From assembly GCA_004431415.1 (NCBI GenBank), contig QPMI01000209.1, forward strand, positions 1-64,000: DNA of 64,000 bases, given 5' to 3'. The notes beneath the pieces were generated by a model, which did no database searches, had not been told where the DNA came from, and worked only from the letters and a program-made list of their open reading frames with translations. Numbering within the stretch: position 1 is the stretch's first letter; every line of letters begins with the position of its first letter. Shown piece after piece: positions 38,429-58,819 of this stretch. The stretch comes from Cyanophora paradoxa CCMP329 (Eukaryota > Plantae > Glaucophyta). The position numbers were made by a program, and so were the translations under genes.

Positions 38429-38956
38429 CATTAACTCACTTGGCTTAATTCTCGCGCGCGATAGACTCAGAGATCTGGATCAGGATCGTATGCTGGAGAT
38501 ATCTGATTTCGAATATACTGCCGGCCGTACACTCTAGTTGAATACAATTGGATGCCTGAATAGCGATCAGGGGGCTGCAAACGAGGCTAAGGTCTACATC
38601 AAGACCGACAGCTACGAGGGTGCTGGCCTCTGGGCGCCTCAAGGGACGGTGTGGGCGGGAAAACGCGAAATGAGGCGGCTCGGACGCCGCGCTTGTTTGC
38701 GAAAACGCGTATGGGTACGCCAGTACAAGTTGACTACTTGGATCAAATTCGGAGTTTGAGACTTAACTGCAAAATTCAGGGCTCGAACAGCCGGCTCGCT
38801 AACCTCAGTAAATCTACTTTACTACCCATTAACTCACTTGGCTTAATTCTCGCGCGCGATAGACTCAGAGATCTGGATCAGGATCGTATGCTGGAGATAT
38901 CTGATTTCGAATATACTGCCGGCCGTACACTCTAGTTGAATACAATTGGATGCCTG
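38429..38956 (-). repeat. 3' split-repeat block: B2 (38429-38558), unique spacer (38559-38663), A2 (38664-38829), B1 (38827-38956)
   Basis: Direct sequence identity between copies. A2 and B1 overlap at CAT 38827-38829. Confidence 0.93.
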
Positions 38957-40309
38957 TGGCCAGATAGAGGAGCGGAGGCGGAGGATGGATTCTGGGGGAG
39001 TGCGAATATAGACCAGGAAGGCGTCGCTCTTCCAGCGACCAAGGAGCTGAATGGCGTAGGCCGGCATGCCGGCCTCCGCGGCCGCCGTCGCCGCGCCGAT
39101 TCGGAAGGAGTGGGGCTGAAGGCGCTGGGCTGCAGGAACTTTTGCAGCGACGAGCCAGGACGCGAGGGCGGCCGAGAAGGCAGAGCGATGGAGGGGCCGC
39201 CCATCGCCGTGGCAGAACAGGAAGTCGCCCGGGCGGTGGGCGAAGGCGTCGACAAGGCGGCGGAGGGCGCAGTGGGCGCACACGGGATCGTCGACGTGAG
39301 GCAGGTCGACGTCGACGCCACTCCGAGCCTGGTCGGTCTTCGAGGCCTTGAGGCGGAGGCGGGCGAAGGGCGGGGTCGCTGGGGATTCGTGAAAGGAGAG
39401 ATCGCGGCGGAGAAAGAGGCGGGTGGGGTCGGCAGGAGAGCGTGTGGCGCAGATTTCGCCTGCGCGAAGGAAGCCGAAGAAGGCCGTGGAGAAGGCGGTG
39501 GCGAGGAGGAGGGAATCGTGGGGGCCGTTTGGTTCTGTAAAAGAGTGCTGCAGGAGGCGGGAGAGGATCTCGGGAGTGATCGGGAGGCGTCGAGGGCGGT
39601 CAGAGGCCGGAGAGGCGTGCTCAATGCCCTTGAGGGCGCGCTGGAGGCGAGGGGAGGAGGACATGAAGGTGCGGAAGCCGGAGTCGACGTGCAAGGACTG
39701 CACGGCATACATGTAGGTGCGGACGGAGCTGGGAGCGACCCGCTTGCGGCAGGCGAGGTGGGCGGCAAAGAGGACGAGAGTGCACTCGTCGGCGGGGAGG
39801 AGAGAATGGGGTCTGGAGGAGGAGAAGAGGCCGAGATCGAGGCAGAATTCGACGAACTGGTTTTGCACGGAGGTATAGGACTGCTGGGTCCTCGCGGCGA
39901 GACCGGCGCTGTACAGGGCTGCGGCGGCGGCAACGAGCCCAGGGTCTCGGGCCACTGCGGGGGAGTCGGCGAGGAAGCCGCTGACGGGAGCCGCTCCCGA
40001 AAGACGCCGATCTGCAGGCGAGAGAGCGGGTCGGCGAGCGTGTTCTGGAGGCCGGGAACGTGCTCGGCGCGAAATTCGAAATGGTAAAGGGCGGAGAGGC
40101 GGTACAGGGAGCGGAGGAGGGGAGCGAGGGCCGGCCGCGAAATGCGGCCGCCGGAGAGGGCATGGAAAACGGGTTGGCAGTCGGTTTGAAAAATAATTCG
40201 CTGCTGCTGCCAGCTGGGACCCCAAGTCGCTGCAGCGATGACGAGGGCCATGAGCTCGCGCCAGGGCATGCTGCGAGGCGTGTCCTCCGGCCACGACCCG
40301 TAAGTCCAC
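38843..40309 (-). CDS. Tyrosine recombinase of the retroelement (true start uncertain; recognisable domain from ~39930)
   Basis: SAM-like LAARTQQSY..F..FC, then FFGFLRAGE (R), LKASKTDQ (K), HSFRIGAAT (H-x-x-R) and LLGRWKSDAFLVYIR (W, catalytic Y). Confidence 0.95.
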   Translation of the reverse strand: MDLRVVAGGHASQHALARAHGPRHRCSDLGSQLAAAANYFSNRLPTRFPCPLRRPHFAAGPRSPPPLPVPPLRPLPFRISRRARSRPPEHARRPALSPADRRLSGAAPVSGFLADSPAVARDPGLVAAAAALYSAGLAARTQQSYTSVQNQFVEFCLDLGLFSSSRPHSLLPADECTLVLFAAHLACRKRVAPSSVRTYMYAVQSLHVDSGFRTFMSSSPRLQRALKGIEHASPASDRPRRLPITPEILSRLLQHSFTEPNGPHDSLLLATAFSTAFFGFLRAGEICATRSPADPTRLFLRRDLSFHESPATPPFARLRLKASKTDQARSGVDVDLPHVDDPVCAHCALRRLVDAFAHRPGDFLFCHGDGRPLHRSAFSAALASWLVAAKVPAAQRLQPHSFRIGAATAAAEAGMPAYAIQLLGRWKSDAFLVYIRTPPESILRLRSSIWPQASNCIQLECTAGSIFEIRYLQHTILIQISESIAREN

Positions 40310-42588
40310 AAGCTGCCGAAAACTGCGCCGAAGCCGAGATTGCTGGCGTCGGTTTGGATTCGCAGCACCGCAGCGGATTGCCAGTCAGACGTAGGGATCA
40401 GGCGGACGCCATGCAGCCGCTGGAGGAGGTCCCGCCACCAGGCGAGGTCAGCTTGAAAACCGGCATGAAGCCGGGCGCGGTGGTGATTGGCCCGCAGGGT
40501 GGCAAGCTGCGCCATGACCCTGCGGAGGAAGAAGCGCCCCGCAGGGACGACAGGCACGGCGGAGACGAGGGAGCCGGCGAGGGAGCGGAGCTGGCTGGCC
40601 GAGGCGTGGCTGCGAGTGGCCCACTCTGCGAGCTGCGCCTCCAAATCCGCGAGCCGCTCCGGAGACAGGCGGGCCACCATCGCGAGGCTGTCAAGCTCAA
40701 TGCCGAGGAAGGTGAGGCGGGTGGCGGGTCCTTCTAGCTTATGCGGGGCCAGAGGAATACCGAGGTCCGCGCAGACCTCGAGCAGCGCGTCGATGTACCG
40801 CCGGCACTCGCCGGTGCCAGCCCGCCCGATGAGGAAAATGTCGTCGACATATCGGGTGGGATCGAGCCCACGGCGACGGAGGGCAAAATCGAGGGCCTGG
40901 CCGAGGTCCTCGAAAATGCGAGGGGAGGAGCGGGCGCCGAAGGGAAGGCAGAGATCGATGAAAAATTCGAGAATGGTGGGATTGGAGCGGGAGGGGAGGG
41001 CGAAGCCGAGAAGCCACCAGTCCTTCCGCCGCACCGCCAGCAGGCGAAAGGCAGACTCGATATCCGCCTTAGCCATCTCGGCGCCGCGGCCAAGCTGGAC
41101 TAGAAGCTCGATCGGCCTGCTGATCTTCGCATTCTGATAATGCAGCTCATCGGGGTCAATGCCGCTATTGACAGACGAGCCGCGGTGCTTGGGGTGCGAG
41201 AGATTATGAATCCGACGCCATTTAGTCGAACGCTTCTTCGGAATTGCACCGACTGGGGAGGCGACGAAAGGGGCGAGGGGAGGAGACGGGAACGGGCCGG
41301 CGACCCGCCCCATGGCGATCTCCTTCTCGACGTCCTGCCGCACTACGTCGATGTGCTCGAGGGCAGAGGGTTCGGGGCGGTAAATTGCAGAGAAACAGGG
41401 GCCGCGGTACTGCAACGGGAAGCCGTGGGCGAAGCCGTGTGCGAGACGGGCGGCGAGGGAGGGGTCCGGGTGGCCCTCCAGGGCTGCGGCGATGCGATCG
41501 GGCCGCACCGGCGTTGGAGCAAGGCCGGGCGGGACGCCTGGAAGCAGCTGATCGACATCGAAGTCGGGGACATCGATGGAGAAGGGCGGTGGGGCCTGCG
41601 GTACCCCGGCCCCAGCGAACAGGCGAGGTCCGGCGTCCGGCAGTGCTGACGGACCGGCTGGGAGAGAGGCGCCCGCCGCGAGGCCCGGGGGGCCAGCGGG
41701 GCGGGCGCGCAGGGAGGCGGCAGCAGGGCCTCCGGAAGGGCGGGCCAGGCCCGCGAAATCGGCGCGAATCGGAGCACCAGCGGCGCCCGCCGCGGGGCCC
41801 GGGGGGCCAGCGGGGCGGGCGCGCAGGGAGGCGGCAGCAGGGCCTCCGGAAGGGCGGGCCAGGCCCGCGAAATCGGCGCGCATCGGAGCGCCAGCGGCGC
41901 CCGCCGCGGGCCCGGGGGCCGGCGGGCGGGCGCGCAGGGAGGCGGCAGCAGGGCCTCCGGAAGGGCGGGCCAGGCCCGCGAAATCGGCGCGCATCGGAGC
42001 GCCAGCGGCGCCCGCCGCGGGCCCGGGGGGCCGGCGGGGCGGGCGCGCAGGGAGGCGGCAGCAGGGCCTCCGGAAGGGCGGGCCAGGCCGCGAAATCGGC
42101 GCGAATCGGAGCGCCAGCGGCGCCCGCCGCGGGGCCCTGGGGGCGGCGGGGCGGGCGCGCAGGGAGGCGGCAGCGGGGCCTCCGGAAGGGCGGGTCAAGC
42201 CCGCGAAATCGGCGCGAATCGGAGCGCCAGCGGCGCCCGCCGCGTGGCCCGGGGGGCCGGCGGGGCGGGCGGCAGGGATGGAGTGTGTGGCAGAGAGATG
42301 GGGCTGGAGAAGGACTGGGGAGGCGCGCAGCCTGCGGGGCGGGCGCCGGGAGTGGCCGCTGGGGGAGGGCGGCGGCCGCGCCCGAACGCGAGGGGGCTCA
42401 GAGGGGGCCGCGCGAGCGGCCTCCGGTGCCCCGTGAACGGCTGGTCGCGGCCCGGCACGATTGCTCCTCGCCGTCGCGGCAGCCGGCGTGCCCGCACGCG
42501 ACGCAGACGTGGCGGCGGCGGCAGCCGTCGCAGCGCCGCCCGTTGTTGTAGAGCCAGCAGACGTCCTCCCCTGGCTGGCCGGCGCCAT
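38932..42588 (-). CDS. Reverse transcriptase / RNase H (DIRS/Ngaro pol) with Ala/Pro/Gly-rich repeat N-terminus
   Basis: RT motifs GRVAGPF, SPVGAIPKK..WRRIHNLSHP, AKADIESAFR, LPFGARSSP, YVDD and FLGIELDS. RNase H motifs TDASNLGFG, TDC and HVPGLQNTLADPLSR. The recognisable protein ends ~39950 but the frame stays open across the YR ORF. Confidence 0.93.
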   Translation of the reverse strand: MAPASQGRTSAGSTTTGGAATAAAAATSASRAGTPAAATARSNRAGPRPAVHGAPEAARAAPSEPPRVRARPPPSPSGHSRRPPRRLRASPVLLQPHLSATHSIPAARPAGPPGHAAGAAGAPIRADFAGLTRPSGGPAAASLRARPAAPRAPRRAPLALRFAPISRPGPPFRRPCCRLPARPPRRPPGPAAGAAGAPMRADFAGLARPSGGPAAASLRARPPAPGPAAGAAGAPMRADFAGLARPSGGPAAASLRARPAGPPGPAAGAAGAPIRADFAGLARPSGGPAAASLRARPAGPPGLAAGASLPAGPSALPDAGPRLFAGAGVPQAPPPFSIDVPDFDVDQLLPGVPPGLAPTPVRPDRIAAALEGHPDPSLAARLAHGFAHGFPLQYRGPCFSAIYRPEPSALEHIDVVRQDVEKEIAMGRVAGPFPSPPLAPFVASPVGAIPKKRSTKWRRIHNLSHPKHRGSSVNSGIDPDELHYQNAKISRPIELLVQLGRGAEMAKADIESAFRLLAVRRKDWWLLGFALPSRSNPTILEFFIDLCLPFGARSSPRIFEDLGQALDFALRRRGLDPTRYVDDIFLIGRAGTGECRRYIDALLEVCADLGIPLAPHKLEGPATRLTFLGIELDSLAMVARLSPERLADLEAQLAEWATRSHASASQLRSLAGSLVSAVPVVPAGRFFLRRVMAQLATLRANHHRARLHAGFQADLAWWRDLLQRLHGVRLIPTSDWQSAAVLRIQTDASNLGFGAVFGSLWTYGSWPEDTPRSMPWRELMALVIAAATWGPSWQQQRIIFQTDCQPVFHALSGGRISRPALAPLLRSLYRLSALYHFEFRAEHVPGLQNTLADPLSRLQIGVFRERLPSAASSPTPPQWPETLGSLPPPQPCTAPVSPRGPSSPIPPCKTSSSNSASISASSPPPDPILSSPPTSALSSSLPPTSPAASGSLPAPSAPTCMPCSPCTSTPASAPSCPPPLASSAPSRALSTPLRPLTALDASRSLPRSSPASCSTLLQNQTAPTIPSSSPPPSPRPSSASFAQAKSAPHALLPTPPASFSAAISPFTNPQRPRPSPASASRPRRPTRLGVASTSTCLTSTIPCAPTAPSAALSTPSPTARATSCSATAMGGPSIALPSRPPSRPGSSLQKFLQPSAFSPTPSESARRRRPRRPACRPTPFSSLVAGRATPSWSIFALPQNPSSASAPLSGHRHPIVFN
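41669..42275 (-). repeat. ~5 tandem copies of a ~114-bp (38-codon) unit in the 5' part of pol
   Basis: GCGAAATCGGCGC recurs at 41753, 41867, 41978, 42090 and 42203. The unit encodes AAGAAGAP(I/M)RADFAGLARPSGGPAAASLRARPAGPPGP. Confidence 0.9.
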
Positions 42589-50496: not shown

Positions 50497-53400
50497 ATGG
50501 TGCAGCAGGAGAGCCCTGTACAGTGGTTCGACCGGGTCACGCAGGCCCGCATCGCGGGCGTCATCGGCCCGGGGCCGGGCCACGAGGAGGTCAAGATCTA
50601 TGAGAAGCACCAGCTGACCCGCCGGCGCACCGGCATCGCCTCTCCGAAGAAGTTCGACCTCGGCATCCCGCCGCACCGCGCGCTCTTCCTCCTCCGCCCC
50701 ACGCACCCCATCCGCGTCGTCTGCGCCGAGATCCTCCGCTCCCCGTGCGCCCCGCCCCGCCCTTCCCGGGCCCGCGCGGCGCGGGCCGAGGCGGAGCGGG
50801 CGGGCGGGCAGGCTGTACGGCTTCCTGAACCTGGTGGTGGTGATCATCGTGTGCGCCTCCATCGCCTCGCGCGGGACGGGCCCCGTCTGGAATGGCCTCG
50901 ACCTCGCCGTCGTGCGCCCCGCTCCGCCCGCCCGCCGCGCCGGACGCCCGCTCACGCCTTCACTCCCGTCCGCCAGACGATCTACTTCACCATCGAGGCG
51001 CGCCCCACCTCGCTCGCCCCCGCGCGCCCGCCCCGCCCCCCCCGCCGAGCCGGGGCCGCGCAGGTGGTCCTGAAGGTCCTCAAGCGGGGCCTGGTGCTGC
51101 ACCAGGGCTCCTACCTCCGGACGGCGTGGCACCTCCTCGACGTCGTCGTCACCGTCCTCGGATGGCTCTCCTACTTCACCGGCGTCCGTCCCGCCCCCCC
51201 CTCCCCCCTTCTCCCCCCCGGCCCCGGCGAGCGATCCCGTACCCCCCTCCCCTCCCCGCAGGTGAACAACTTCACGTCGTTGCGGGCTCTCCGCGTCCTC
51301 CGGACCCTCAAGTCCCTTGTCCTCCTCCGCAGTCCGCCCCCGCCCCGTACCCCCCGCCCCGTCCCCTTCCCCCCCTCACTTTCGGCGCAGCGGTGCGGAT
51401 CTTCGCGGAGGCGGTCCTCTCCTCCATCCCCATGCTCCTCCAGGTGCCGTACCCCCTCGCCTCCCCTCGTCCGCCGGAGCGGGGCCCTGAGGCGCCGCCT
51501 CCTCTCCCCGCAGTGCATCGTCCAGCTCGCGTTCTTCTTCATCATGTGGGCCCCTGCCGGTCCCCTGCCCGCCTCCGGGCCCCGTCTAACTCTTCTCCGC
51601 CCCCGCAGCTTCGGGATCGTGGGGACGGCGGTCTTCCCCGCATCCCTCCGCTTCCGCGCCGTGGACGGCCTCACCGGTGCCCCCTCCTCTTTCCTCCTCC
51701 TTCCGCCCGCCCGCTCGCTCACGCGTGCGCTCGCGCTCGCCGCAGGGCAAGTGCCGGCGGGGTGGGACCCCGAGTTCCCGCAGTTCATCTGCGGGGAGGC
51801 GTTCCCCCCCGCGCGCACCCCCGAGCCCGGCCTCGTCTGCGTGCACGCCGCGAACCCGACCTGGGGGTACACCAACTTCGACAACACGCTCTGGGTCTGG
51901 CTGCTCCTCTGGCAGTGCCTCTCGATGAGCCGGTGGACGACCTTCATGTACTGGACGTGGGACAGCCTGGGGGCGGGGGCCATCCTCTTCTTCTGGGCCG
52001 TCGTCATCTTCGGCTCGCTCCTTGTCGTCAACCTCACCCTCGCCGTCGTCCGCCCCGCACCTCCCCCCTCTTCCTTTCGTTCATCCGAGCAGCGCCTGAC
52101 CGGCCGGCGCAGCTGAACAACACGTACGCGTCGCTGGTGCAGCGGGACGCGGGGCTGGCGGCGCGGGCGCGCCAGGCCGGCGGCTCCTCCACCGGCCCTA
52201 AGAGCGCCGACGTCTCGGGGGCGACAACGCGCATCGGCCAAGCCCTCTTCCGCCTCCACACCTGGCTCTACAAGCGCTACGACCGCGCCGCCGACTGGAT
52301 CTACGACCGGCGCGCCCGCCCCGCCCGGCCCCTCCCCTCCCGAGCGACCGCCGAGACTGAGGCTGACGGGGGCGCGGGCAGGGCGCACTCTGACCTGGAG
52401 GCACTCCCCGCGTACCGCTACCGCGTGGAGAAGATCCTCGAGGGGAAGACCTACCGGCGCGCCCGCCCCGCCCCCTCATCTGCACCGGCCTCCCTCCCCG
52501 CCTGAAGCGCCGCCCGGCCGGCAGGTTCATGGTGGACACATTCACGTGGTTCGGCTGCATCCTCATCTGCTGCTACTACCCCGACATGCCCGACGGCGCC
52601 CGCACCGCCGTCGAGGTCCCGCCGCCCTCGCCCTCCCTCCCTCCGCGCCCCGCGCCTCCTCTCACGGCCCGCGCGGCAGGCGATGAACGTGGTGGCGGTG
52701 GGGGTGTATGCGGCGGACGCGGCGCTGCGGGTGTACGCGCGGGGCCCGCTCCGCTGCATGGTCCACTCCATGTCCGACTGCATCGACGTCACCGTCGCCG
52801 TCATGGGCCTCGTCCAGGTGCCCCCCCGCCTGTGCCCCGCTCCACGCGAGCCGCCTGACGCCGCCGGCCAGATCGGGATCAACCCGCCGGACCGGGCGGC
52901 CGGCGTGCGGGGCGGCTCGCCGCGGCTCTTCCTGTACCCCTTCCGGTTCTTCCGGCTGGTGCGGGTGGCGCGCTACTGCCGGTTCAGCAGCATGCGGGCG
53001 ATCACGATGGACACCGTCCGCTCCCTCCGCACCGTCGCCGGCTTCGTGCCGACCCTCCTCGTCTACATCCTCGTCTGCGCCCTCTTCGGCATGCAGCTCT
53101 TCGGCGACACGTACCCCCTCGACGAGCGCCCCCACTTCGCCTCCTTCTGGGACGGCGCCATCCTCTCCGTCTTCCGCATCCTCACCGCCGACCGCTGGAA
53201 CGAGGCGCGCCTACCCCCCTTCCCTATCATCCCCCCTCTTGACCCCCGCCGCCGCCTCGCAGACGATGTGGGCGGCGATGCGGTACAGCGGGAGCCCGTG
53301 GGCGGCCCTCTATTTCGTCCTCCTCCAGGCCATCGGCAACTGTGCGCGCGCGCCCCCGGCCCTCCCCTCCCCTCGCCCCGCAGCTCTCGTCTTTCGTCGT

Positions 53401-56400
53401 TCGACTCGACCCGCCCCGCCCCGCCCGGGCGCGCGTGCAGTCATCGTGCTGAACGGGCTGGTGGCGGTGCTCATCTCGTCGCTCTCCTCCTCGGAGAGCC
53501 GCAAGAAGGCCGAGGGGGAGCTCCTCGCCCTCAAGACCCGCGAGGCGCTGCTCCAGGGCGCCTTCCAGCCGCCCCCGCTCCGCTCCGGCATCCGCACCTT
53601 CGCCTCCCTCCCGGGCACCGAGGCCGGGGCCGGCGGGGTTGGCGCGGGGGGCGCCCCGCGGGCCCCGCCGACCCAGCGGGTGCCGCGCTCCGCGACGGGG
53701 CCGGCGCCGCCGCGGCGCGCCGTCGGCTTCGCGTCCCCCTCGGAGCCGGCGCTGGGCGCCCCCGTGCGCATGCGGGCCGGCCCGGGCCCCGGCGCGCCCC
53801 TCAACGCCGGCGGCGGCCCCGCCCCGCCCTACCTCGTCGACGTCCTCCTCTCCGACTCGCCTCAGGCGGCGCCCCCGGGGCCCTCCTCGCCCATCCCAGG
53901 GCCCCTGCCGACGCCCCCGGCCTCCCCTCCCTCCGTCTCCGCCCCGGCCCCGGCGTGGGCGCCGGCGCTGGGGCCGGAGCCCCTCACCCTCTTCCCCGTC
54001 CTCAAGCTCAAGCAGCCGGTGCCGCCGCGGACGGTCTCGTTCTCCTTCGCGGGGACCAACGGGGCGGCGGCCGCCGTGCCGGGGCCGCTGCCCCCGCGGG
54101 GCGGCGTGGAGGGGGCGCTGGCGGCCGGGCGCGCCCTCGCCGGGGCCCCAGCGGCGCTGGACCTGCACGAGATCAAGCTCTCGGGGGCGCCCCCGGGCCA
54201 GGAGGAGCCCGCCCGCCCCGAGCGCCCCGCCGAGCGCGCCGCCTTCGGGCCCTCCGCCTCCGAGTCCCGCCGCACCCGCCCCTCGGGCCCCGTCACCGCC
54301 GCCGGCCGGCCCGTCCCCGCGGCGGGGGCGGGGACGGGGGCGCAGAAGGGGGCGGCGCAGGGGCGGCCGACGCCGGCGTACCGCCGCGGCTCGATGATCC
54401 GGGACGCCTGGGGCGTGCCCCGCGTCACCGCCGGCTTCCACCTCCCCCTCTTCGTGCGCGGGGGCCCCCCGCCGGCCCGCCGGGCCCGCTTCGCCACTGG
54501 CCTGACGCCGCTCCGCCGCGCACGCAGGAGGCGACGCGGGGCCGGCGGACGTCGCTGCCGAAGCAGCCGTCGCTGCTGCGGAAGGCGCCGACGCAGGACT
54601 TCACGCGGGCCTCCTCGTTCGTGCCGTGGCGCGCCGGCTACTCGCTCTTCGTGTGGAGCCCCGAGAGCCCCGCCCGCAAGGCCCTCCGCCGCCTCATCTA
54701 CTCCTGGCCCTTCCACGCCGCCGTCCTCCTCGTCATCCTCGGCTCCTGCCTCACCCTCATCCTCGACTACCCCTCCAACCCCCGCCTCACCGTGCCCGCC
54801 TCGCATCCCCCCCCCCCTCTTTTTGTTCGGCGGCGCATGTACCCCCCTGCCCCGCAGGGCGTGCGCGTGGCGGACGCCGTGTTCACGTGCCTCTTCCTCG
54901 CGGAGGCTGCCCTCAAGATCCTCGTCCGTACCCCCCTCGCCTTTCGTACCCCCGGCCCCCCCGTTGCGAACCGGCGCGCCAGGCGCTGGGCTTCGTGCTC
55001 GACGACGGGGCGTACATACGGAGCCCGTGGCACTGCCTCGGTCCGTGCTCCTGCCCCCCGGAAGCGTGTCGGCTGCGCCCGCCCGCCCGCCGGGCGGCGG
55101 CTGAGGGCGGGGGCAGACCTGGCGGTGGCGATCGCGTCAGCGACGTCGCTGGGGAGCGTGGAGGGGGGCCCCGGGCAGCGCGCCGCCCGCGTCCTCCGCG
55201 TCTTCCGCGTCCTCCGGCCCCTCCGCCTCATCCGCCAGATCAAGGGCATCAAGGCCCGCCCCGGACCCGCCCCGCGGCCTTCGCCCCCCCTCTGACCCGA
55301 GGCGGTGCAGTTCGTGACGCTCTCGCTGCTGCGGTCAGTGCCCGGGATCGTGCGCGTCACGCTCCTCCTCTTCATCGTCTGGGGCTTCTTCGCCACCCTC
55401 GGCATGCAGGCCCGCCCCCGCCCCCGCCCTTGCCCCCCCACCCCTGCTCCCGCCCCCCTCTCACCCCGCCGGCAGCTCTTCATGGGCCGCCTCTCGTACT
55501 GCACGGACCGGACGGTGGCGACGCAGGCGGAGTGCGTGGGCACGTACCTCTCGGAGAGGGGCGGGCGGCCCCTCCAGCGCGCCTGGCGCCCCGCCGACTC
55601 CAAGTGCGCTCCGCCCGCCCGCCGGCAGCGCAGCGCAGCGCGGGCTGAGCCGCGGGGCGGCGCGCAGCTTCGAGAATCTGTCGACGGCGATGCTGACGCT
55701 CTTCGAAATGTCGACGCTCTCGAACTGGGTCGTCTTCATGTACAGGTGCGGGGGCGCGGGCCCGGGCGGGTGCGCTGAGGGTGAGCTCACCGCTGCGACG
55801 GGCGGCGCAGCGCGATGGACAGCACGGGGATCGGGACGGGCCCGCGCGTGAACGCCGACGTCGCCGCCTCCGTCTACTTCCTCGCCTTCCTCGTCTTCGG
55901 CGTTTTCGTCCGCCCCGCCCCTTCTCTCTTTTTGCTGCTGCTCTCCCTCTGAGCGGCGCGGCGCGCAGGCCGTGCTCAACTGGTACAGCGCCGTCATCGT
56001 CATGTCCTTCATCAAGACCCAGGTTCGAGCCCGGCCGGCGCGGATCGACTCCGCACGCCAGCTCGCCTCACTCGGGCCGGGTCGCAGGAGGAGCGTCGGA
56101 CGCGGCGGGAGCAGGAGCAGCGCGTGTGGGAGCCCGACTGGACGGAGGACGGGGGAAACCCGCGCCCGCCGCTCCCGCAGATGACGACGGACCAGAAGCA
56201 GTGGGCGCAGGTTAGACAACCTGCTGACACGCCTGCGCGGGCGCCGCGGGGCTGACACGGTGGGCGGCGGCAGGTGCTGCACGAGTCGCTGGCGCGGCCA
56301 CTGAAGCCGCGGATGAAGCGGGCGGGGCAGCACTGGCGCCGCGCCATCGGCGGCTTCCTCCGCCGCAAGTGGTCCGCCCCGCGCACCGCCGCGCGCCCCG

Positions 56401-58819
56401 CCCCGCGCACCGCCCCGGGGCGGCGCTTGAAGGGCGGCGGCGCGGCAGGTTCGAGCCGGTGATCGTGACGCTGATCGCGGCGGACGCGGCCATCCTGCTC
56501 GCCAACTCGGCCGACCAGACCAAGGCCGTCGACGAGGGCCTCATGGTCCGCCCGCCCCCGCCCGCCCCCCGCCCCCCCGCCCCCCCCCCCCCTTCTCGAG
56601 CCGGGCGGCAGTGGACGAGCTTCGCGCTGAGCGTCGTATTCATCGTGGAGATCGCGCTGCGCATCCTCGCCCTCGGCCCCCGCCAGTTCCTCCGCGACCG
56701 CTGGCGCTGCCTCGACCTCCTCATCGTCGGCTTCACCGCCGCCAGTGCGCCCCGCCTCGACCGTCCGTGCCGGCCCCGGGCGAGGCGGCTCTGACGCCGG
56801 CCGCGCGGCAGGCTCGGCGGCGGACGTGGCGATCTTCTACTCGCGGCCCGGGGAGAGCAACCGGGTGACGGCGGCGCGGGGCCTCCGCGTCCTCCGCATC
56901 GCCCGCGTCTTCCGCCTCTTCACCCGCACCAAGGTCCGCCAGGCGGAGGGCGGTGGGGGCTGGGTTACACCCTAGTCACACCGTAGTGATCGCAAGAGAC
57001 GCTCGCCACGCCTCCGCTCGCCGGGGCCGCTCGCCGGGGCCGCTGACCGGGGCGGGGCGCGGGGCGGGCAGTCGCTGTCGCTGCTGTTCGACACGTTCGC
57101 GGACTGCCTGCCGGGGCTCGCCGAGCTCTCCGTCTTCTTCCTCCTCCTCGGCTTCGTCTGGGCCGTCATCGGCGTCCAGGCCTTCGGCACCCAGCGCCGC
57201 GCCGTCCGCCCCCGCCGCCCCCTCCCCCGCCGCCCCCGCCGCCCCTCCTTCCTCCCCCCGACGCGCCCCGTGCCCCGCCCCCTGCGCAGGGGAACGTGGA
57301 CGTGCACGCCAACTTCGAGCACGTGGGGTACGCGGCGCTCAGCCTCTTCGGCTTCGCCACCGCCGACCGCTGGAACGACGTCATGTGGTCCATCGCCGTG
57401 CGCCCCCGCCACCCCCGCCCGCCCGCCCGCCCGCACGCCACGCCGGCCGCGCCCGCCCGCCCTCACCGCCTCCCTCTCTCTCCCCCGCCAGAAACCGGCG
57501 CCGGAGGACTGCCCTGAGGGCCCCGGGGCGTGCGACGCGCCGGCCGCCCCCCTCTACTTCACCACCTGGATCTGGCTCTCCCGCGTCCGCCCTCCGCCCC
57601 ACCCCGTCCGGCCCCGCCCCGCCTCACGCAGCCCCGCCCCCTCAGCTCGTCTTCATGAACCTCATCGCCGCCGTCTGCGTGCGCCGCCCCCGCGGACGGG
57701 CCCCCGCCCCCGCCCCGCCCGCCCCGCCCCGCCCCGCCCGGCCCCGCCCGACCGCCCCGCGCGCGCAGATCGACGCGTTCCAAGTGAACGCGCGGGAGCG
57801 GCTGCACCTGGTGCGGCGGCGCGACGTGGAGCGCTACCTCCGCTGCTGGCAGAAGTACGACCCGACCGCCTCCGGCTGCATCCGCGCCCACGTCCGCCCC
57901 GCCACGCCCCGCCCCCCACCTCGGTCCTCCCGCCACCCGAGCGGGCCGGCGCAGGCGCACCTGGTGCCGCTGCTGACGGACATCGGGCCGCCCCTCGGCC
58001 TCCGCCACGACGCCACCCGCTCCGACATCCTCCGGTGCCCCCTCGCGGCTCCTCCCCCGCCCGCCTCTGCGCCTCGCGCTCAGGCGGGGGCAGGTTCGTG
58101 CGGTCGCTGCGGATCCCGCTGGTGTACGGGGTCCACCTGCAGTACCGCGTCCTCCTCCACGCCCTCATCGACCGCACCTACATGCTCGCGTGCGCCCCAG
58201 CAGGCCCAGCCCGCCCGAGCCGCGCCCGAGCCGGGGCGGGCCGGGCCCCCAGGCTGGTGCCCATGGTGCCCGAGATCGACCGCGAGGCGCGCTTGGGGTA
58301 CATGCGCGAGTGCCCCGTGCTGCGGCCCTACAGCGGGCCCGAGCGCGACACGCTCCACACGTCGCCCACGGTCCGCCCGCCGCCGCCCGCCCTGCTCGCC
58401 CTGCTCGGCCGCCTCGTGACGCGAGGGGGGTACAGGTGGCGGAGATCTTCGCGGCGCTGGCGGTGCAGCAGCAGTGGCGGCGCATTCTGCGGGCGCGGGC
58501 GAGCTCGCGGTTCATCGTACCCCCCGTGCACGACGTCTTCAGCGCGATCACGCGGCCGGACAAGCCGGCGGAGGGGGACGAGGGGTACGAGAGCGACGAG
58601 GCGGAGACGGAGCACGTGGTGGTGACGGGCATCCGGGCGCGGGCGGAGGCGGCGCGGGCGCTCAACGCCCCGACCATCGCCGAGCTCGTGGCCCCCGCGC
58701 CGCTGAGCCCCGAGGAGGAGGAGGAGGAGAGGAAGAGGAAAGAGCGCAAGAAGAAGGGGAGCAAGGAGGGGAGCCGGCGCGGCGGCGGCCTCGAGGAGAA
58801 CGACAGCTCGTCGGTCTAG
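50497..58819 (+). CDS. Four-domain (4x6TM) voltage-gated cation-channel-family alpha subunit (Cav/Nav/NALCN superfamily) with atypical filter
   Basis: Four S4 helices: LRALRVLRTLK, FRFFRLVRVAR, RVLRVFRVLRPLRLIR and RGLRVLRIARVFR. Four P-loops. III-IV linker MTTDQKQW. C-terminal EF-hand-like WQKYDPTASG..IGPPLG and IQ-like AALAVQQQWRRILR. Stop at 58817-58819. Confidence 0.93.

Follow-up and report, generated by a model that had tools for sequence, protein, structure and literature searches.

The characterised channels of the Cav, Nav and NALCN groups have, to our knowledge, acidic, small neutral or, rarely, lysine residues at two positions of each pore loop, that of the selectivity ring and that of the beacon next to it. 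Glaucophytes are a group from which we know of no channel that has been characterised so far. We describe here a gene of the glaucophyte Cyanophora paradoxa CCMP329 that encodes a four-domain channel of this superfamily with Ser, Asp, Ser and Asp in the ring and Arg at the beacon in three domains, a combination that we did not find among the relatives sampled or in the literature searched. It is modelled at 50497-58819 on the + strand of a stretch of 64,000 nucleotides (contig QPMI01000209.1 of assembly GCA_004431415.1, positions 1 to 64,000), which we call the window. Below, the four domains are DI to DIV and S1 to S6 are the transmembrane segments of each; HFS (high field strength) stands for the selectivity ring, and HFS+1 for the next position, the "beacon" of PMC10120453.

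Comparison with described channels

The animal Cav channels (Cav1 and Cav2 with an EEEE ring, Cav3 with EEDD) resemble the Cyanophora channel in the four Ion_trans repeats, the fully charged S4 segments and the T-x-X-x-W register of the pore loops. They gave the best Protein Data Bank (PDB) matches for every pore exon, the Asp of DIV is as in Cav3 DIV, and a putative EF-hand-like proximal C-terminus may be a further likeness. However they are only about 30-40% identical to the Cyanophora channel and have four ring carboxylates where it has two, and Asp at the DII beacon where it has Arg, with further Arg at HFS+1 in DI and DIV. In place of the fully acidic ring of Cav channels (EEEE, EDEE or EEDD) and of Asp or Gly at the beacon (PMC10120453), it has S/D/S/D followed by R/R/N/R.

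The nearest full-length relatives found, from Mesostigma viride (EP00899_P019947, here P0142) and Rhodelphis marinus (P0047), have E/E/E/E rings. P0142 shares a Cys-containing DIII turret motif with the Cyanophora channel, but in both relatives HFS+1 is Q/N/G/G, without Arg, as against R/R/N/R. The protist channels surveyed in PMC5824947 belong to the same superfamily and are equally uncharacterised in selectivity; two further relatives, P0098 and P0106, share the D-S-D of DII to DIV.

With regard to Nav1 and Nav2 (DEKA, DKEA or DEEA, and one residue short at the DII beacon), the Cyanophora ring is without Lys, and its DII loop is of full length and aligns ungapped on Cav DII; in HMMER searches of PDB chains with either the DII or the DIV exon, Nav scored below Cav. 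NALCN and Cch1 have the same four-domain architecture and also carry positive charge in the filter region, but the charge in NALCN comes from a Lys that is itself a ring residue, whereas here it comes from Arg beside the ring. The S4 segments of NALCN are also charge-poor, and those of the Cyanophora channel fully charged. The accessible text of a 2025 phylogeny includes glaucophyte channels, without a description of their filters, and places them in a wider NALCN/Cch1 "clade A" (PMC12412391). For the present channel we reject such membership, as NALCN chains matched the DIV exon at an expectation value (E) of 4e-4 as against 4e-11 for Cav3, none matched the DII exon at 1e-3 or below, and the NALCN/Cch1 ring (EEKE, EKEE or EEEE) and DIV beacon Asp are different.

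The selectivity filter

Searches and comparisons were run exon by exon. Translation of the pore loops gave ...WQCLSMSRWTT in DI, ...FRILTADRWNE in DII, ...FEMSTLSNWVV in DIII and ...FGFATADRWND in DIV, and with HMMER against PDB chains each of the four exons aligned ungapped on a Cav filter. The DI pore exon, comprising turret, P-loop and S6 (51746-52047, + strand, as are all features of the gene; Ion_trans E 3.8e-10), fell on Cav2.2 DI "fqcitmegwtd" (E 2e-11), and the DII exon, with the S3-S4 loop, S4 (at about 52926-52985), S5 and P-loop (52872-53204, Ion_trans E 6e-11), on Cav1.3 DII "vfqiltgedwn" (E 4.6e-13). The DIII pore-loop exon (55668-55745) fell on Cav3 DIII "lfvlsskdgwvnimy" (E 1e-5) and that of DIV (57290-57397) on Cav3.1 DIV "lfrvstgdnwng" (E 4e-11). 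Because all four align gap-free on Cav filters, we read the selectivity ring as S/D/S/D, standing on the Cav E/E/E(D)/E(D), and HFS+1 as R/R/N/R.

By translation, MSRW of DI is at 51925-51936 (HFS Ser 51928-51930, HFS+1 Arg 51931-51933), TADRW of DII at 53184-53198 (HFS Asp 53190-53192, HFS+1 Arg 53193-53195), TLSNW of DIII at 55714-55728 (HFS Ser 55720-55722, HFS+1 Asn 55723-55725) and ADRW of DIV at 57362-57373 (HFS Asp 57365-57367, HFS+1 Arg 57368-57370). A preliminary description of the window, made by inspection, had placed the four pore-loop peptides at these positions, ungapped on Cav, and had given the same filter and the same residues next to it; translation and the HMMER alignments reproduce the peptides, and the alignments uphold the filter in all four domains. 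It had also pointed to TADRWN as common to DII and DIV, which is real, down to identical codons. Gene conversion between these two pore loops is unsupported, as identical TADRWN codons have a P of about 0.10 under the codon bias of the gene.

The same description set two Asp against three Arg and drew from this a near-neutral or positive pore mouth. The count for HFS and HFS+1 is right, but a positive mouth does not follow from it, as the acidic residues at HFS+4 in DII (Glu of DRWNE) and DIV (Asp of DRWND) had been left out; over the three rings the sum is about -1. This Glu and Asp lie one helical turn from the DII and DIV Arg and could pair with them.

Occurrence of the pore among relatives

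For a survey of pores, 102 near-full-length proteins, the best matches in a search of 1.84 billion cluster representatives, were aligned and the exon fragments were added one by one. In 90-100 of these relatives, depending on the domain, the Trp two residues past the ring is kept, and this validates the filter columns. Of the rings, 53 are EEEE, and nearly all others consist of E or D. Asp is found at HFS in 16-23 relatives per domain and Ser in one to three per domain, but S/D/S/D was found in none of the 102. Arg at HFS+1 is likewise absent from all 102 in every domain; Lys is present there in two relatives in DII and two in DIV.

The nearest ring patterns are D/D/S/D in P0098 and A/D/S/D in P0106, both from uncultured eukaryotes, and S/D/D/G in P0148, while Arg occurs within the ring in P0003 (R/S/D/D) and P0089 (R/D/D/D). 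P0098 and P0106 are not close to the Cyanophora channel, ranking 58th and 14th respectively by the tree of the DII exon and 59th and 48th by that of the DI exon, and by BLAST sums and single-exon trees P0148, P0003 and P0089 are not close relatives either.

Some of these are worth a remark of their own. P0003/P0152 and P0089 are four-domain channels of uncultured eukaryotes with Arg in the DI ring, and P0003 has Arg also at HFS-1 of DIII and DIV (TRDGW and TRDEW). They represent another Arg-rich type of pore and may be the prasinophyte clade to which PMC5824947 refers.

In the literature searched we did not find "SDSD" together with "selectivity filter", and a 2023 review of the occupancy of the beacon never mentions arginine (PMC10120453). 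Many odd filters of unknown selectivity came to light when 277 four-domain channels of eukaryotes, with no glaucophyte among them, were surveyed, such as T/E/N/D in Chlamydomonas, N/D/D/N in Paramecium and filters containing Arg or His in Micromonas and Ostreococcus (PMC5824947). The earlier remark that no pore with S/D/S/D and Arg was known is thus borne out by the 102 relatives and by the literature searched. As aligned here, the pore is without precedent among the relatives sampled and in that literature. Odd filters in protist four-domain channels are already on record, and this pore is a variant among them and not clearly a new class.

Gene structure and transcription

The gene model has 39 exons with 5,661 nt of coding sequence, or 1,886 codons plus stop, from the ATG at 50497 to the stop codon at 58817-58819 and with no internal stop. 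G+C in the part of the window around it is 70-78%, and G+C at third codon positions (GC3) is 0.979 in the channel frame as against 0.72 for exons overall. The 38 introns are 54-138 nt each, 31 of them GT-AG and seven GC-AG. For the central part of the model the joints of RNA contigs were refined to splice sites, and between 52113 and 52871 the search was constrained by the length of the transcript contig. The 5' and 3' parts come from dynamic programming on splice sites and codons, a procedure that recovered joints known independently.

Of sampled words of the window, about 0.5-0.56 were present in seven runs from the same organism, and 0.80 in one older run. Four runs (X1, X3, X6 and X12) were compared with 51700-57450. 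In that segment contigs of X1, X3 and X6, which come from two studies, match exons only and skip the introns, while those of X12, a DNA run, are colinear with the genome with introns present; we conclude from this difference that X1, X3 and X6 are derived from complementary DNA (cDNA). Comparison of these RNA-like contigs with the window gave no base differences, insertions or deletions, and all listed joints resolve to GT..AG or GC..AG once ambiguous bases are allowed for.

In the three RNA-like runs there are joints flanking the pore exons of DI, DII and DIII, those of DIII being 55603>55668 and 55745>55811 in all three runs. RNA contigs cover the DII exon, and those of X1, X3 and X6 cover 51745-52047, with the DI pore exon, in both cases with no difference; the DIV pore-loop exon is also covered by X1, X3 and X6, its own joints not being among those listed. 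A check by cDNA had been recommended in the preliminary description, and the intron-less contigs of three runs, identical to the genome, support the spliced frame. The channel gene is intact, spliced and transcribed.

There is no sign of RNA editing at the filter codons, as the RNA-like contigs are identical to the genome. Pore exons used alternatively, as 12a/12b are in Cav3, were considered and rejected: with introns of 54-138 nt there is no space for them.

GC-AG introns are unusually common in this gene, with seven among 38, three of which are backed directly by RNA-contig joints, from a total of 17 joints resolved to splice sites. They are at 52310-52381, 52457-52524, 53205-53262 (directly 3' of the DII exon), 55254-55310 and 55410-55475, and as modelled also at 50998-51063 and 51459-51513. 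Donors follow the consensus G[T/C][G/C]CGCCC, acceptors GCAG. A literature search on such introns brought up nothing specific.

Voltage sensors, linkers and C-terminus

Pfam Ion_trans (PF00520) was matched in exons of all four repeats, at successive positions of the profile and in order on a single spliced frame. On these matches the product belongs to the Cav/Nav superfamily, as a voltage-gated channel with four domains. In each S4 the charges stand at every third residue. DI has R-R-R-K (exon 51262-51331, modelled, without a listed RNA joint), DII five Arg, DIII seven Arg and two Lys (S3-S4 exon 55117-55253, Ion_trans E 1.8e-5, with RNA joints), and DIV five Arg followed by R/K (exon 56812-56933, with RNA joints and a Pfam match). 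That all four sensors are kept, as had been stated at the outset, can thus be read from the exon translations of every domain. The conserved Asn is found in the S6 exon of every domain.

The linker between DII and DIII, which is about 320 residues long and rich in Pro, Ala and Gly, is encoded together with the end of DII S6 in one exon of about 1 kb (53441-54453), which is transcribed continuously, as judged by unbroken cover with RNA contigs; no relative of this linker was detectable. The linker between DIII and DIV (exon 56088-56210, with RNA joints) carries PQMT, a degenerate form of the Nav-type inactivation motif, which we take to stand where Nav has IFMT.

In the proximal C-terminus the exon at 57769-57891 encodes an EF-hand-like stretch, with a GPHH match at E 0.0024, which is below the Pfam cut-off, and weak matches to EF-hand and Nav C-terminal domains. 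It also aligns with the C-terminal domain of the Mesostigma channel at E 2e-5. A basic helix resembling an IQ motif, at about 58445-58498 in the last exon (58436-58819), was recognised by eye; a search of PDB gave nothing relevant for it and Pfam gave no support. Of the EF-hand and IQ-like tail proposed earlier, the first part is therefore weakly supported, and the second remains a reading by eye.

Relatives and origin

The DII exon was used in an exhaustive HMMER search of 1.84 billion cluster representatives, accepting E up to 1e-3. It gave 523 proteins, of which one is close, a Cyanophora paralogue fragment (P0001), and the next best is about 35% identical. P0001 is the EukProt C. paradoxa gene model tig00000254_g22449.t1, a fragment of 150 residues that is 62% identical over the DII exon. 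In its DII, HFS is Asp, and HFS+1 is Gln where the channel described here has Arg; the exon boundary is also elsewhere. Summed per-exon BLAST gave no match resembling an orthologue, the identities all being 36-41% across about 500 aligned residues. Word-index protein searches with the DI pore exon, with the DII exon within a stop-free open reading frame (ORF) of 870 aa, and with P0001 were blank, a result that is little informative given the length window of the tool, and exact-sequence look-ups of P0001 and of the 870-aa ORF in contigs gave no match.

In the tree of the DI pore exon the gene pairs with P0142, the E/E/E/E channel of Mesostigma, with support of 0.99. Support in the single-exon trees is otherwise weak, so the placement is rough, and we give no weight to deeper nodes. 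The DI pore exon is 47% identical to P0142; for the turret and pore exons of DIII the figure is 45-48%, for the pore exon of DIV 44%, and in this comparison the pore exons are among the best conserved parts of the protein. We take it from the tree and these identities that the channel is descended from EEEE-type Cav-like channels of archaeplastids. A pore scaffold kept while the ring residues are altered is as a change of function would predict and not as decay would, and decay of the channel gene is on this pattern unlikely. The preliminary description had also argued against decay, and the frame open over 39 exons, the spliced transcripts, the full S4 charges and the conserved pore scaffold all agree with it.

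What the pore may conduct

Removal of EEEE carboxylates in Cav channels abolishes Ca2+ block, high-affinity binding and selectivity and leaves non-selective monovalent permeation, and Nav mutants of the DEAA type are non-selective. Ca2+-selective channels need Gly or Asp at the entry site. The beacon lies at this pore entry, just above the ring, and a Cav3 channel becomes a Na+ channel when a nearby Lys neutralises the Asp of the DII beacon (PMC10120453). In the Cyanophora channel Ca2+ selectivity has probably been lost, and a Ca2+-selective site in its pore is very unlikely, because the filter has two diagonal Asp, two Ser and three beacon Arg.

We tentatively favour, at somewhat less than even chances, a conductance activated by depolarisation and of low selectivity, carrying mainly monovalent cations with little permeation or block by Ca2+. 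Given the sensors, depolarisation would still open the gate. With only two diagonal carboxylates left and guanidinium groups at the entry site, the high-affinity Ca2+ site would be unable to form, and the conductance would probably be small because the Arg partly neutralise the Asp.

Several points weigh against a monovalent conductance of this kind. The Arg may pair with the HFS+4 Glu and Asp of DII and DIV and so leave the Asp free, or they may occlude the pore entirely, and a ring of three Arg could exclude cations altogether. The exons 5' of 51745 (50497-51676) and 3' of 57072 have the model and read depth as their basis and not listed joints. Lastly, no orthologue was found in the protein searches (exhaustive HMMER and summed per-exon BLAST) or in two scans of metagenome contigs of the Joint Genome Institute (JGI), with the DII and the DI exon.

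If the ring of Arg plugged or neutralised the filter, the protein would be a voltage sensor that conducts hardly or not at all and signals by conformational coupling or by gating-pore currents. There is a precedent in Cav1.1 of teleost skeletal muscle, which conducts no Ca2+ and works as a voltage sensor. All four S4 are fully charged, three guanidinium groups face two carboxylates at the narrowest part, and the absence of Arg at HFS+1 from all 102 relatives suggests that it is normally incompatible with conduction. However the pore helices, the Trp and S6 are as conserved as in conducting relatives, which is not expected if permeation is irrelevant, and no coupling partner is known, so that we consider a silent sensor unlikely. 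A switch of charge selectivity, to anions or, by way of Asp-Arg pairs, to protons, seems to us quite improbable. It has a parallel in Hv1, in which an Asp-Arg pair gives H+ selectivity and removal of the Asp leads to anion permeability, an analogy said to come from the work of Musset et al. (2011) and Dudev et al. (2015). HFS and HFS+1 taken together do hold two Asp and three Arg, net +1, with adjacent D-R pairs in DII and in DIV, but with the HFS+4 Glu and Asp of these domains the outer mouth is again at about -1, cations would still be favoured by the backbone carbonyls of HFS-1 and HFS-2, and we know of no natural anion- or proton-selective P-loop channel in the four-domain superfamily.

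The channel might also be an ordinary voltage-gated one that is permeable to Ca2+; its two Asp, with the outer acidic residues, would then suffice for Ca2+ selection, and the Arg would face away from the pore. CatSper and TRPV5/6 select Ca2+ with rings of Asp only, Asp is frequent at HFS among the relatives (the 16-23 of 102 per domain given above), and HFS+4 is acidic in both DII and DIV. As only two of the four ring positions are acidic, and the DII beacon is Arg where Ca2+-selective channels have Asp (or Gly), we hold this to be very improbable. That the gene is a decaying duplicate, or an artefact of assembly or annotation, we find barely credible. The lineage has the paralogue P0001, so one copy could be redundant, and the failure to find an orthologue would fit, but the frame is open over all 39 exons with a GC3 of 0.98, three runs have correctly spliced transcripts that do not differ from the genome, the S4 segments keep all their charges and the pore scaffold is 44-48% identical to that of a streptophyte alga. 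A poorly selective, mainly monovalent conductance is the most likely of these readings.

Surroundings of the gene

An ORF of 1,217 aa on the - strand (38932-42588), which begins the list of neighbours about 8 kb upstream of the gene, has a reverse-transcriptase domain (RVT_1, E 1.4e-10) and is probably a retroelement. It is situated at the border between a block of lower G+C (about 12-40 kb, 56-65% G+C) and the gene-rich part of high G+C. Within the block, an ORF on the + strand at 18827-19549 matches Laminin_G_3 (E 3e-9), a concanavalin-A-like lectin/glucanase domain; no Pfam match was obtained for the other long ORFs tested in the block.

Significance

The HFS ring and the beacon explain which ions the Cav, Nav and NALCN channels select, and the Cyanophora pore would be a test of these rules of selectivity. 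The channel occurs naturally, is expressed and combines only two carboxylates in the ring with three Arg at the beacon in a conserved scaffold. This is a part of sequence space hardly touched by mutagenesis, and both a paralogue in the same genome and an outgroup with an EEEE ring are available for comparison. By analogy it might even be the first natural four-domain P-loop channel of the Cav/Nav family with a pore not selective for cations, whether for anions or for protons through an Asp-Arg pair as in Hv1, or else a protein of a unicellular alga that serves as voltage sensor only; we think this improbable, but if conduction of anions or protons, or no conduction, proved true it would be a first for the superfamily. 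The channel is also one from which something could be learned of electrical signalling in glaucophytes.

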